From: Ostrea edulis
Taxonomy: Eukaryota
Length of the DNA: 64,000 nt
Assembly: GCF_947568905.1 (NCBI RefSeq)
Contig: NC_079164.1
Span: forward strand, 52,948,001-53,012,000
Direction: 5' to 3'
Part shown: piece after piece, positions 9,573-25,202 of the stretch
Numbering within the stretch: position 1 is the first letter of the stretch
How the letters are laid out: each line of letters starts with the position of its first letter
Translations under genes and position numbers: made by a program
Notes under the pieces: model-generated
What the model saw: the letters and a program-made list of their open reading frames with translations, nothing else
Database searches by the model: none
What the model was told of the DNA's origin: nothing

Positions 9573-9620
9573 GTCTGCCCCTCCACAGAACCCCGTGGCC
9601 GGTCCAGGAGGGCCACCCAT
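9573..9620 (+). CDS. Syb: Synaptobrevin exon 2 (48 nt, phase 2-2): (M)SAPPQNPVAGPGGPP(M)
   Basis: ag|GTCTGCC...CCCAT|gtaagt; Pro/Gly-rich VAMP-type N-terminus; in frame with exon 3. Confidence 0.8.
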
Positions 9621-10795: not shown

Positions 10796-10877
10796 GTCGA
10801 CAGCCGGAGGCCCAGGGGGGCCACAACCAGCCCAGCCTAGTAAGCGCTTACAGCAAACTCAGGCCCAGGTCGACGAG
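10796..10877 (+). CDS. Syb: Synaptobrevin exon 3: STAGGPGGPQPAQPSKRLQQTQAQVDE
   Basis: tgtag|G...GAG|gtttgt; KRLQQTQAQVDE is the synaptobrevin signature. Confidence 0.97.
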
Positions 10878-12789: not shown

Positions 12790-12868
12790 GTTGTGGATAT
12801 AATGAGAGTCAACGTTGATAAAGTGCTAGAGAGGGACCAGAAAATTTCAGAACTAGATGACAGAGCAG
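12790..12868 (+). CDS. Syb: Synaptobrevin exon 4: [26 protein letters not shown]
   Basis: atag|GTT...GCAG|gtaag; R-SNARE motif including the zero-layer Arg (VLERDQ). Confidence 0.98.
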
Positions 12869-17185: not shown

Positions 17186-17265
17186 ATGCACTGCAAGCTG
17201 GGGCATCACAGTTTGAAGCAAGTGCTGGCAAACTGAAGAGAAAATATTGGTGGAAGAACTGCAAG
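17186..17265 (+). CDS. Syb: Synaptobrevin exon 5: (D)[26 protein letters not shown]
   Basis: acag|AT...AAG|gtaat; SNARE C-terminal half and juxtamembrane KRKYWWKN. Confidence 0.98.
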
Positions 17266-18092
17266 GTAATATGATAACATTGCTAAGGTTTTCATAGATA
17301 TTGCTAATGAAGTAATAAAGAATTACAGATTTTACATAGATTTTATGAGAACACAGACAGTAGTCTTCACGAAAACTCAATAGCCTGAGGCTAGTTAGAA
17401 TTTATCTGGGCTAGTGGAAATTGTCACAAAAGTAGCTCGATGAGCTAGCAAAAATATAAATAGTAAATTGATCTTATAGAAATTTTATCAAAATAAACTG
17501 TCTGAATTAGCTTTTCCTTTGTTTACCTTTTCATTATGATGCTTGTTACTTTGAGACTTGACATATATGTTTGAAATCATTTTAATGAATATGATGATAT
17601 CCTTGACCTTCAAAATCACACCAAAATGAAAAAAGAAAGAAATTACTGAAAAAGAAACTCAAAGTAACTGAGTAAGCACAAGAAATATGAGAAGAGTTTG
17701 AGACGCAGTGCCTAAAGAGGCAGTGTTTAGAAGATGAAATTGAAATGGAATAAAATGATGAACATTAATTTTGTCAAAGCCACTGTTACTGGCTAGTGGC
17801 TCAGAAAAGTTTTTGTGAAGACTGAGACAGGTTTAGTTTAGTTGTACAAAATTTATTTATAATGATCAACATTTTACAATAAACATTCATATGTGAAGTG
17901 CATTAGAAAATAAGCCAAAAGGCTTATATTAATGCTACTCTCCAAAGGCAGGTTTCCAAATACAATTTAAAATTTTGGGTCTGACCCAGCTGGAATCAAA
18001 CCTATGAACTACATTTGTACAACAAAGTGAATGATTATATTTACTTCCCATCAATAGAATGAATCTGAGGTATTGTGTAAAAAAAATTGCAG

Positions 18093-18144
18093 ATGATGAT
18101 AATATTGGGCGTGATAATTGCTGTCATAGTAATTATTATAATTG
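18093..18144 (+). CDS. Syb: Synaptobrevin TM exon 6a (52 nt): MMIILGVIIAVIVIIII
   Basis: gcag|ATGATG...ATTG|gtaagt; in frame after exon 5; classic VAMP transmembrane start MMIILG. Confidence 0.92.
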
Positions 18145-18681
18145 GTAAGTTCAAAAAGAGACTCTTTGTAAGTGTACTATATGTTGAATCACTTGTTTTG
18201 TTAGTTTATGTAGTGATTAGCAAAGTCTAGTATTATTTTGGTTATACGTGTACTATACAAAAACCTACAGCATGATATAGTTTTTGTCCTGTTCATCTGT
18301 CTGTCTTTGGAAAAAATTATAAATTTTAAGATATTAATGAGAGGACTTTTTATATTTTATGGTCAACTGACCTTGACATTGACCTTTGACTCACTTATTA
18401 AAATTTATAGCAATTCTTATAACTTTTAAACCAAGACATGTAGAGAGAGGGTGTTGCCATTTAGTGGGTATAATCCTTTTGATAAGGCTCTTCCAACCAT
18501 GCCGTTTTTGACTATGTTTTCTAAACACTAATTGTTGACGCACTTTAAAAAAAAAAAAAAAAAAATTGTCATATTGCTTGAAACTTTTGAATTATAAGAG
18601 AGAGGTCTTGATAGTCCTTGTGACAAGGTTTTTCCAGTGGTACCTAAGATCCTTATTTTAATAACTTTAACATAGCTTCTA

Positions 18682-18980
18682 AATTTCTCACTCATATTGA
18701 GACATCACCAGCTGTAGGTGAAGTACCACAATTTTATACCTATGCTTAGTGCTCAGGGCCATAGCAGTGAGGGTTCTTTATCGTGCCAATGCCTGCCATG
18801 ACACAGAATCTCAATTTTTAAGGTCGTCCAAAAGACCCATGATTTCCACTTCTAAATGCCTAACGTCTGGCCAAGGAGCTATCACTGCCTATGTTTTATG
18901 CTGTCATTGCACGAGTGGGGTTTGAACTGATGACCTCCCAATTACAAAGCGAACACTCTACCACTGAGCTACAGTGACTG
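18682..18980 (-). mobile_element. tRNA-derived SINE, near full length, diverged
   Basis: Minus strand reads gtagctcagtggtagagtgttcgc...gttcaaacccc (A and B boxes) followed by a body homologous to 46529-46860. Confidence 0.8.
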
Positions 18981-20548
18981 AAAAGCTTTGATATTTAGTG
19001 TAATCTTTGTGATAATTAGGGCTGACTTCATACACATTTGACTACTTTAATTAGCAACACCATGAAAATATGAATGGTAGGCTCGAAATTTACGTATTTT
19101 GGTTTCACACCATAATTGAATAGCAGAAAATAAAACATGAGAATAAAAATATTCAAGATTGGTTTTAACCATTGTGTTATAAGTATATATATAAAGAGGG
19201 GGGAAATCCTGTTCAGTGTTGACACTTACTACAAACTAGCCTATATCAAATGTGATGAAAATAAAAACTAAATTAATGTTTTTAAAAGAAAAATGAATAC
19301 AATTAAATCACATGGAGTGTAATTTATTCCCGTGATTTCTCAATTAAGTCCAAAAGAGTGAGAAAAATTTATATAGAGTTATATGAGGAGGGATAGTATA
19401 TTTTAACTTTTGACCACATAAAACTTTTATGTCCCTCATATTTTAGAATATTACTTTTTACAATCAAACTAAAACAAAAAAAAATTATAAACCCATGCAT
19501 CTATTTTTTTTTGTGTATCAAGTGTCCTTGAAATATTAAAAACTAGATTCTAATTATGAATAACATGCCATGTATTGCATCTTTGCATACACGTATAATT
19601 ATTTAGTCATAATATTTCCATTTTCCAATGTTTTGCAAGCAATAAACCAAACATCAACAAAATTCTCAATAAAAACATATGCAATGCTGACACAAGATAT
19701 ATAGTAGACAGATTTGACACACAGATGACATTTCAAACTGACATGAAATTCTTTATTTATAGATAGATATAAAGGAAGAAATGTCTGATTGTATCATGAA
19801 AGACGTTAAAACTGTCCATATGGAAATTTCCCTTTCTTTCATTGTTTCTATATCCCCCATATCATAAGGAAATGAGATATATATTATTCCTTAAGTGTAT
19901 TGGATAAAAATTAATGGCATCAATAAATTATATTATCAAGGGGAGGGGGGAGGGGTAATTTCACCTCTACTTTTGATAGAAATCTTTAATTACAATCATA
20001 GGTTGTTGTTTTTTCACAAAGGCATTCATGTTTTTCAAATACATCTTGTTTTGAATGAATAATTTTGGAAGTCTTTAAAAATTACATGTGACCAAAAATT
20101 AGATATGATTGTTGTTCATTTCATCAGTGTGTTTTTCCATTTGTATTATATAATTTTAATTTCTATATTCTTCTTTATTTTTAATGTGATTGAAGACCAG
20201 ATTGTGAAAAAGCCTAAAGTTAAGAACTGATTTATCGATCCTTTTAACTTTAAGATTTAGAGTTCAGTATGGAGTGAAGCTCAAGAAAATTCAGAATGCA
20301 TATTGAAATCTGTGGACCTTGTATTGGTACATGTATTTGTAACAGTGCAGTATGCCTTGATTCAGTGTTACCACACGCTGACTTCAGCACCATACAGTAT
20401 TCACAGTAGTGCAGTCTGCTATCAATTTGCTCTCCTCACACAACTCAAAAGGGTTAAATTTAATGTTTTTAAGATCATACTGGTTAACAAAAAGTATTGT
20501 TATTTGAATGTGTAGACCTTGAAATACATACTACTTTTGCTTTTGCAG

Positions 20549-20562
20549 TCTGGTCATTTTGA
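20549..20562 (+). CDS. Syb: Candidate terminal exon 7a: (V)WSF*
   Basis: Strong acceptor cttttgcttttgcag|TCTGGTCATTTTGA; phase 1 matches exon 6a; reachable only from 6a. Confidence 0.5.
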
Positions 20563-20635
20563 GTCCTGTGTCTTCATTTGATCTTATGTTTTTGTGCACC
20601 AGTGTATTTGTGAACACTTATTTGTTTATTTCCAG

Positions 20636-20687
20636 ATGTGGTTAATTCTTATTGCAATAATTGTTATTATAATCATAATAATAGTTG
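20636..20687 (+). CDS. Syb: Synaptobrevin alternative TM exon 6b (52 nt): MWLILIAIIVIIIIIIV
   Basis: tttatttccag|ATGTGG...GTTG|gtaagt; same length and phases as 6a; fully hydrophobic. Confidence 0.8.
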
Positions 20688-24593: not shown

Positions 24594-24619
24594 CTTGGGT
24601 GGCCTCTACTTATGGTTAA
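24594..24619 (+). CDS. Syb: Candidate terminal exon 7b: (A)WVASTYG*
   Basis: ctccag|CTTGGGTGGCCTCTACTTATGGTTAA; phase 1; similar to 7c. Confidence 0.6.
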
Positions 24620-24901
24620 TCAACAGAAGTAAGCATCTTCGGTGCTCACTGTAGTAATGTTTATATGTAGTGTGTAGATGTAATGTTTACATGTAGTGTG
24701 TCTGGAACGTGTCAATTTCATGCTATCTTTATAAAGGCTGTTCATAACCCCATCCCCCAACCCCAAAACTGGGTTTTCATGAATAGATCATACCAGAATT
24801 ATTTTCACCTGATGTTGTAGCAAATACAGCTGTTATTATAGATGATGCTTTTACTATAAACTGTGTATGTTGTTAAAAATGCTATCCTCTAACTTTTACA
24901 G

Positions 24902-24930
24902 CTTGGGTGTATTCAAAATATGGTGGCTAA
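24902..24930 (+). CDS. Syb: Candidate terminal exon 7c: (A)WVYSKYGG*
   Basis: ctctaacttttacag|CTTGGGTGTATTCAAAATATGGTGGCTAA; branch-point-like CTAAC; phase 1; similar to 7b. Confidence 0.6.
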
Positions 24931-25202
24931 AGGTTGTTCTGTGTGTTGTGTACTCAATTTTTCATTCCTTTTAGATGGATTCTTTTATTTTGTCTGTTTT
25001 CATGTTATCATGTACAGATTGCTTGAATTTTCCTTGTTTTAGGTCTCTGCACCAGTTCATTTTCTTATTCTGGGGCACTCATTGTTTTAAGCATTTAAGG
25101 TGGACCAATACTTGATATTTTATATTTGCAGTCATGCTGAATTAGTTTTCTTACAGAGATACACATCCTTGTAAATGGATAAACCATTAAAGTTTATATT
25201 AA

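Follow-up and report, generated by a model that had tools for sequence, protein, structure and literature searches.

Why should a single synaptobrevin gene carry two neighbouring exons, each encoding a membrane anchor for the same protein? This question is raised by a stretch of 64,000 nucleotides of the oyster Ostrea edulis (contig NC_079164.1, positions 52,948,001 to 53,012,000 of the forward strand; hereafter the window, in whose numbering all oyster positions are given), which carries the oyster's single brevin-type R-SNARE gene (synaptobrevin/VAMP) and, within it, two homologous exons of 52 nucleotides (nt), referred to here as 6a and 6b. An initial annotation of the window had proposed that these exons are mutually exclusive, and that splicing exchanges the whole membrane anchor of the protein. 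The evidence presented here indicates, with a probability which we put at about 0.8, that 6a and 6b are an ancient mutually exclusive pair, inherited rather than specific to the oyster, and that the two anchors were divided among the vertebrate paralogues.

The exon pair and its reading frame

The gene lies on the + strand, and its spliced exons yield the O. edulis RefSeq protein sequence, given that the segments 9573-9620, 10796-10877, 12790-12868, and 17186-17265, followed by 6b and by the sequence from 31148 onward, reproduce the protein P0009 exactly from residue 2. The heptad core of the R-SNARE with its central Arg (ELDDRADALQ), the KRKYWWKN juxtamembrane segment, and a single C-terminal anchor are read from 12790-12868, 17186-17265, and 6a or 6b, and Pfam PF00957 (Synaptobrevin) matches P0009 with 118 bits and the second RefSeq isoform, P0125, with 115 bits, the curated cut-off being 26.4.

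Both exons measure exactly 52 nt, lie between an AG and a GTAAGT, and have a phase of 0 at the start and of 1 at the end, which agrees with the initial annotation (18093-18144 and 20636-20687), as does the end of exon 5 at 17265. The two are identical at 33 of 52 nt and at 9 of 17 residues: 6a reads MMIILGVIIA..., with a Met-Met start and a Gly at position 6, and 6b reads MWLILIAIIV..., with a Trp at position 2 and an Ile, rather than a Gly, at position 6. The loss of the Gly and the gain of the Trp in 6b were therefore correctly described, but the exchange is not that of the whole anchor, of which only the first 17 of approximately 22 residues come from 6a or 6b, while the remainder, (V/A)-W..., is supplied by a terminal exon.

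The terminal exons expect phase 1, and encode VWSF (20549), AWVASTYG (24594), AWVYSKYGG (24902), or VWAVADQKNKSSG (31148), followed in each case by a stop codon. Either 6a or 6b alone is in frame with every one of them, yielding an in-frame anchor plus tail, whereas the two together read ...IIIIDVVNSYCNNC..., in which the anchor is followed by DVVNSYCNNC... in a shifted frame, and the omission of both gives ...KNCK followed by a short frameshifted tail with no anchor. Translation thus confirms the claim that double inclusion shifts the frame, and extends it to double skipping. Since the terminal exons are read correctly only after a single anchor exon, exactly one of the two would be kept, and only single inclusion gives a tail-anchored SNARE.

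A scan of the 64-kb window for open frames of 49, 52, or 55 nt bounded by AG and GT/GC, with at least 85% hydrophobic residues, returned 6a and 6b and nothing else, and a motif scan without splice-site rules, which covered the window and five foreign loci (approximately 270 kb, + strand), returned genuine brevin transmembrane exons only. The match between 6a and 6b is far beyond chance.

Use of the two exons

The use of the exons was assessed in four runs, all in the form of Logan contigs, from which minor variants are dropped and which cannot show absence; the tissues are unrecorded, and one tiny run is recorded as RNA, while two are only guessed to be RNA. In a run from a related species (X7, guessed to be RNA), a contig joins 17263 to 20634 with GT..AG and a 2-base ambiguity, equivalent to 17265>20636, at a word depth of 450, and thereby skips 6a. 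The letters that follow 20687 in this run encode VWAVADQNSK, a match to the 31148 exon with a species difference, and those that follow it in an O. edulis run (X6) are identical to the window from 31148 onward. The junction of exons 4 and 5 is present in a further run (X8), and the contig depth over 6b reaches 181 and 149, as opposed to approximately 3 in the flanking intron. Exon 6b is certainly used.

Of the two junctions that the initial annotation had set against each other, 17265>20636 was thus seen in an RNA contig, and 17265>18093 was not, 6a being without cover in the four runs. The doubt that 6b might never be spliced in and might not be conserved is dispelled by the 17265>20636 joint, by the joining of 6b to 31148 in two runs, and by the presence of b-type anchors from molluscs to vertebrates. 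The use of 6a in O. edulis, on the other hand, may be inferred from three observations, namely that its frame and splice sites are intact, that its anchor shares 14-16/17 with the a-types of other phyla, and that other bivalves, Mytilus (P0103) and Potamilus (P0026), have properly spliced a-forms.

Both forms are already present in RefSeq. The O. edulis 'VAMP3-like isoform X2' (P0009) is composed of exon 5, 6b, and 31148 at its C-terminal end, and the 'Synaptobrevin-like isoform X1' (P0125), from the same contig, has the same upstream exons and includes 6a. In P0125, the 6a segment and what follows match 18081-18227 of the window, as the model ignores the 6a donor and continues with intron sequence (GKFKKRLF...; GKFKKRLFVSVLYVESLVLLVYVVISKV and a stop codon, 18145-18227), and the RefSeq a-form of O. 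edulis is mis-modelled. Read-through models of this type are also found in Lottia (P0126) and Elysia (P0260).

The proposal of mutual exclusion is supported by these records, given that the RNA joint skips 6a, that no isoform with both exons was found among the annotated isoforms of the species examined, and that double inclusion or double skipping would shift the frame. The record of single inclusion in RNA consists of the joint of exon 5 to 6b without 6a, in contigs which could miss rare double inclusion, and no RNA contig contains 6a.

Relationship to the anchors of VAMP1, VAMP2, and VAMP3

Each of the two oyster anchors resembles that of a different vertebrate protein. Exon 6a has the MMIILG... 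anchor of VAMP1/2, with a Gly that corresponds to G100 of VAMP2, and the oyster b exon has the MWAILIAVI...-type anchor of VAMP3. Database searches returned many mollusc isoforms with both the b-form and the a-form as queries, and the vertebrate matches were VAMP3 for the b-form and VAMP1/2 for the a-form. A total of 288 anchors were extracted from the retrieved proteins, with 181 being of the b-type (MW...), 92 of the a-type (MM..LG), and 15 others, which include two extraction artefacts (P0132, P0290). All the vertebrate b-types among these proteins are VAMP3 or a lamprey protein, and all the vertebrate a-types are VAMP1/2.

The identities were compared in 19 representative anchors of 17 residues each, which gave means of 14.2/17 between b-types, 11.1 between a-types, and 7.7 between a and b; in the first ten residues, the corresponding means were 8.3, 7.1, and 3.8 of 10. 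Within one gene, a and b are identical at 7-12 of the 17 residues. Exon 6b shares 14/17 with the VAMP3 of a skate, from which the annelid and chiton b-types differ at a single position (annelid, 16/17), and 6a shares 16/17 with the brittle-star a-type, 14/17 with those of a chiton, a gastropod, and a mayfly, and 12/17 with shark VAMP2. In a maximum likelihood tree (IQ-TREE, 33 anchors, 17 columns), all the b-types, that is, those of molluscs, annelids, a nemertean, ticks, a spider, an acorn worm, amphioxus, a lamprey, and VAMP3, form one clade, with an SH-like approximate likelihood ratio (SH-aLRT) of 90 and an ultrafast bootstrap (UFBoot) of 93, although 17 low-complexity residues limit the power of both the tree and the identities.

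The vertebrate proteins differ from the oyster isoforms in that VAMP1/2 and VAMP3 are separate genes, which also diverge in their N-terminus, tail, and promoter, whereas the oyster forms share everything except for the 17 residues. A single amphioxus gene makes both forms, and each of the retrieved vertebrate proteins carries one type. VAMP1, VAMP2, and VAMP3 (12p13, 17p13, and 1p36) are presumably ohnologues from the two rounds of genome duplication (2R). One lamprey protein (P0225, Lampetra planeri 'VAMP1-like isoform X1') has a b-type anchor followed by an IYFSI tail like that of VAMP1/2, a mixture that was not seen in the jawed vertebrates retrieved.

Exon pairs in other species

Isoforms of the same gene which differ only in the anchor exon were found in the chiton Liolophura (P0095, a-form; P0020 and P0015, b-forms), in Biomphalaria (P0124, a; P0226, b), and in amphioxus (P0273, a; P0268, b), the latter with consecutive RefSeq accessions and in one cluster. 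In RefSeq, the name 'synaptobrevin-like' or 'VAMP2-like' is given to the a-forms, and 'VAMP3-like' to the b-forms. Five further loci were examined, from Ptychodera (L001), Owenia (L002), Amphiura filiformis (L003), Branchiostoma floridae (L004), and Ephemera danica (L005), and tandem pairs of anchor exons were located in the annelid Owenia and in B. floridae (Table 1). The exon length of 52 nt, the phases, and the position of the exons are identical across three phyla.

The amphioxus locus also has three alternative tails, (L/V)YFYK, WATQ, and WAVTSNQ, each ending in a stop codon, and its a-form is also joined to the VAMP1/2-like LYFYK tail (P0269). The b and a exons are only 90 nt apart in this locus (L004 23473-23562), a distance so short that the spacing from donor to branch point might by itself block the joining of b to a.

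Alternative explanations

A number of observations weigh against an ancient pair that is still alternatively spliced in the oyster, and each of these must be set against the explanation that it would favour. It may be argued that 6b is, in effect, constitutive in oysters, and that 6a is a relic or is very rarely used, in which case there would be no true alternative splicing at this position of the gene in O. edulis. The contig depth over 18038-18171 is in fact zero in all four runs, in comparison with 149-181 over 6b, and no 6a>tail junction is documented for O. edulis, as P0125, the sole model of this species with 6a, runs past the donor into the intron. The a-form matches listed (the best 120 proteins, with 46-145 amino acids) include no properly tailed oyster a-form, and the acceptor of 6a has a poor polypyrimidine tract (0.32). 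However, contigs of this type lose rare variants and the tissues sampled are unrecorded, and the frame of 6a is intact, with an AG at its acceptor and the consensus GTAAGT at its donor. Its anchor is identical at 16 of the 17 residues to that of an echinoderm, and at 14 to the a-types of a chiton, a gastropod, and an insect, which an unused exon would not have retained over hundreds of millions of years; with spliced a-forms also found in Mytilus and Potamilus, a relic 6a is improbable.

The pair may also be mutually exclusive in the spiralians without being ancient, if the likeness to VAMP1/2 and VAMP3 were convergent, the amphioxus duplication independent, and the divergence of the vertebrate paralogues subsequent to gene duplication. 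The order of the exons, a-b in the oyster and the annelid, is reversed in amphioxus (b-a), where a and b share 12/17 residues, the highest value of the same-gene pairs, and where the a-type groups beside the b clade in the tree. The anchors are composed almost entirely of I, V, L, and A, so that likeness can recur. Only one type is present in the ambulacrarian and mayfly loci, given that the acorn worm Ptychodera (b only; L001 22517-22595) and the brittle star Amphiura (a only; L003 37626-37704) have no intron between exon 5 and the anchor, and the mayfly (L005) has a separate a-type exon with no b; in these three loci, no second anchor exon was found, even by the motif scan without splice-site rules. 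An ancestral three-copy array with differential loss would nevertheless account for the reversed order, and the placement of the amphioxus a-type is plausibly due to a 3' half converted to match its neighbour. Convergence is, in addition, difficult to reconcile with the clean separation of the types in the first ten residues, with the single clade (90/93) of b-types from many phyla, with the identical length, phases, and position in three phyla, and with the pairing of the amphioxus a-form with a YF-type tail, as in VAMP1/2, and we consider this explanation to have little chance of being correct.

Origin, mechanism, and function

The preferred explanation remains that of an ancient, mutually exclusive pair divided among the vertebrate paralogues. 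In this view, the VAMP1/2 anchor would be the orthologue of the a-type, and the anchor of VAMP3 (cellubrevin) that of the b-type, so that one gene in the forerunner of protostomes and deuterostomes most likely produced both forms already. A more specific scenario, which we favour with rather less assurance, is that the ancestor of the protostomes and deuterostomes had one brevin gene, with both anchors supplied by mutually exclusive 52-nt exons and followed by alternative VW- and YF-type tails, an arrangement still present in molluscs, annelids, and amphioxus, and that in the vertebrates, following genome duplication, these forms became fixed as VAMP1/2 and VAMP3.

Under this model, the pre-mRNA would offer two tandem homologous exons after exon 5, of which one would be retained, as enforced by the frame, and a short terminal exon, of which there are several, would then follow the chosen anchor. 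The polypyrimidine tract is weak in the acceptor of oyster 6a (0.32) and strong in that of 6b (0.68), with values of 0.45 (a) and 0.64 (b) in Owenia, and, given these acceptors, 6b may be the default form, and 6a a regulated form that depends on an activator. Rbfox-type TGCATG motifs near the exons presented no consistent pattern in three species, and no regulator is put forward on their basis. Following the vertebrate genome duplications, each paralogue would have kept one of the exons, a process known as splice-isoform separation.

A neuronal or secretory role is probable for the a-form, by analogy with VAMP2 as opposed to VAMP3, and with the neuronal UNC-64A syntaxin of C. elegans (PMC4946901). 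The a- and b-forms may also differ in sorting or fusion kinetics. Exon 6b has an Ile at the place equivalent to G100 and an additional Trp beside the WW motif; in 6a, the second small residue is an Ala at position 10, rather than at position 9, which is the place of Cys103. In VAMP2, the replacement of G100 and C103 by Val slows the opening of the fusion pore (PMC5460238), while other work found that beta-branched anchor residues promote fusion (PMC4972536), and the direction of any kinetic effect is for this reason left unpredicted. An equally plausible function is the choice of anchor-dependent partners, such as synaptophysin, which binds synaptobrevin, and BAP31, which binds cellubrevin, both of which need the anchor (PMC2132629).

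Known systems and significance

A close likeness in arrangement is that of exons 5a and 5b of SNAP-25, a core exocytic SNARE, which are also tandem, equal in length, and mutually exclusive, and are under developmental and neuronal regulation. SNAP-25 differs in having no transmembrane anchor, its exon 5 encoding part of the SNARE helix and the palmitoylated linker, and its pair is still spliced in vertebrates instead of being shared out among paralogues. The C-terminal forms VAMP1A and VAMP1B, on the other hand, arise from alternative exons that follow the same 17-residue anchor exon, and correspond to the oyster exons at 24594, 24902, and 31148; these exons change the last few residues, and leave the body of the anchor unchanged. 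Tails such as SKYR were found among the retrieved proteins.

The exchange of a C-terminal SNARE anchor by alternative splicing is known from exons 8a and 8b of the unc-64/syntaxin gene of C. elegans, where the neuronal form, UNC-64A, is promoted by the neuronal splicing factor UNC-75/CELF, and is the only one to rescue neuronal function (PMC4946901). That protein, however, belongs to the Q-SNAREs and its alternative exons are 3'-terminal, whereas the oyster R-SNARE has an internal pair of homologous exons of equal length, followed by separate terminal exons. Abascal et al. (2015, PMC4494069) list 11 cases of splice-isoform separation, CALU of teleosts among them, in which homologous exons that had been mutually exclusive were parted when the gene was duplicated. 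The oyster pair would resemble these in that an ancestral exon pair gave one member to each duplicate gene. That screen began from pairs that are still spliced in human, whereas the spliced state of the present pair survives only in invertebrates, and a pair that had been fully resolved in the vertebrates would thus have been missed.

The papers PMC4494069 and PMC4417111, which deal with exon pairs and the duplication of genes, make no mention of VAMP, and full-text literature searches, which have most subscription journals outside their scope, found neither the exon pair nor its link with VAMP1/2 and VAMP3 described, so that an earlier report is possible. The isoforms are already RefSeq models, and tandem exclusive exons, the swapping of anchors in syntaxin, and splice-isoform separation are known kinds of event, to which the oyster pair seems to add a new case of unusual age.

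In textbooks, VAMP2 stands for the neuronal v-SNARE and VAMP3 for the ubiquitous one, and the weight of their anchors is still debated. Both Gly100 and the beta-branched residues of the VAMP2 anchor affect the opening of the fusion pore (PMC5460238, PMC4972536). A single gene that alters only 17 residues of the anchor is a clean natural experiment, which provides matched pairs of isoforms for tests of sorting and fusion kinetics. The retention of this choice in three or more phyla suggests that the type of anchor has a function of its own, and, if our reading is correct, selection would have acted for over 500 million years on the identity of the anchor itself, beyond the site of expression. 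It would also add a clear case of splice forms that became paralogues at the vertebrate genome duplications, invisible to screens based on human exon pairs. The pair explains, in addition, why isoforms of one invertebrate gene bear the names 'synaptobrevin-like' and 'VAMP3-like', and draws attention to the mis-modelled X1 of O. edulis.

Organization of the gene and other features

The coding features of the oyster gene, and the exon pairs of the two other loci, are listed in Table 1. The N-terminal cassette is symmetric, with AT|G at both ends, and gives the N-terminus MSAPPQNPVAGPGGPPM-STAGG... when kept and M-STAGG... when skipped; isoforms of the chiton have an N-terminal alternative of the same kind. 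All the alternative terminal exons begin with (V/A)-W, those at 24594 and 24902 being tandem relatives of each other, and support from RNA in the runs used was found for 31148 only.

Table 1. Features of the synaptobrevin/VAMP gene in the O. edulis window, and tandem anchor exons in two other loci.
Feature	Position	Strand	Evidence or remark
Optional N-terminal cassette exon, 48 nt, SAPPQNPVAGPGGPPM	9573..9620	+	tblastn of O. edulis and Crassostrea isoforms; splice sites; exact translation
Coding exon, (M)STAGGPGGPQPAQPSKRLQQTQAQVDE	10796..10877	+	Sequence, translation
Coding exon, first half of R-SNARE motif, 26 residues	12790..12868	+	Sequence, translation
Exon 5, 27 residues, phase 0 end, donor common to 6a and 6b	17186..17265	+	Translation; RNA contigs; exon 4-exon 5 junction at loose contig end
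Exon 6a, a-type (VAMP1/2-like) anchor MMIILGVIIAVIVIIII plus one base, 52 nt	18093..18144	+	Splice sites, conservation, RefSeq X1 (P0125)
Candidate terminal coding segment, VWSF and stop, 87 nt 5' of 6b, usable by 6a only	20549..20562	+	Sequence alone
Exon 6b, b-type (VAMP3-like) anchor MWLILIAIIVIIIIIIV plus one base, 52 nt	20636..20687	+	Splice sites; RNA joint 17265>20636; RefSeq X2 (P0009)
Alternative terminal exon, coding part, (A)WVASTYG and stop	24594..24620	+	Identical tail after b anchor in Crassostrea angulata, Magallana gigas P0001, P0002
Alternative terminal exon, coding part, (A)WVYSKYGG and stop	24902..24931	+	Similar bivalve tails (P0003 AWVASKYS, P0103 VWLYNKFG); none seen in RNA contigs
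Alternative terminal exon, coding part, (V)WAVADQKNKSSG and stop	31148..31189	+	RNA letters after 20687 in X6, X7; exact P0009 match
Annelid Owenia tandem pair, 52 nt each, order a-b	L002: a 28462, b 28936		GTAAGT donors
Branchiostoma floridae tandem pair, 52 nt each, order b-a	L004: b 23421, a 23563

The intron between 6a and 6b contains a high-copy repeat at approximately 18680-18950, where the contig depth is in the thousands in all the larger runs, with many rearranged joints, and which is presumably a fragment of a transposable element.

The brevin genes of arthropods have a tandem pair of exons in the SNARE motif (VVGIMRVNVEK... and VVDIM[K/R]TNV...), located at approximately 16411 and 16620 in the E. 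danica locus. The tick isoforms P0238 and P0240 use one or the other of these exons, and the gene models of spiders (P0213, P0214, P0216, and P0229) and of the mayfly wrongly hold both. Judging from these sequences, the two exons seem to form another mutually exclusive pair, specific to arthropods and situated inside the SNARE helix. Finally, the brevin gene of A. filiformis has approximately seven tandem, partly degenerate copies of a KRLQQTQAQVDEV exon, at L003 28293-29083.

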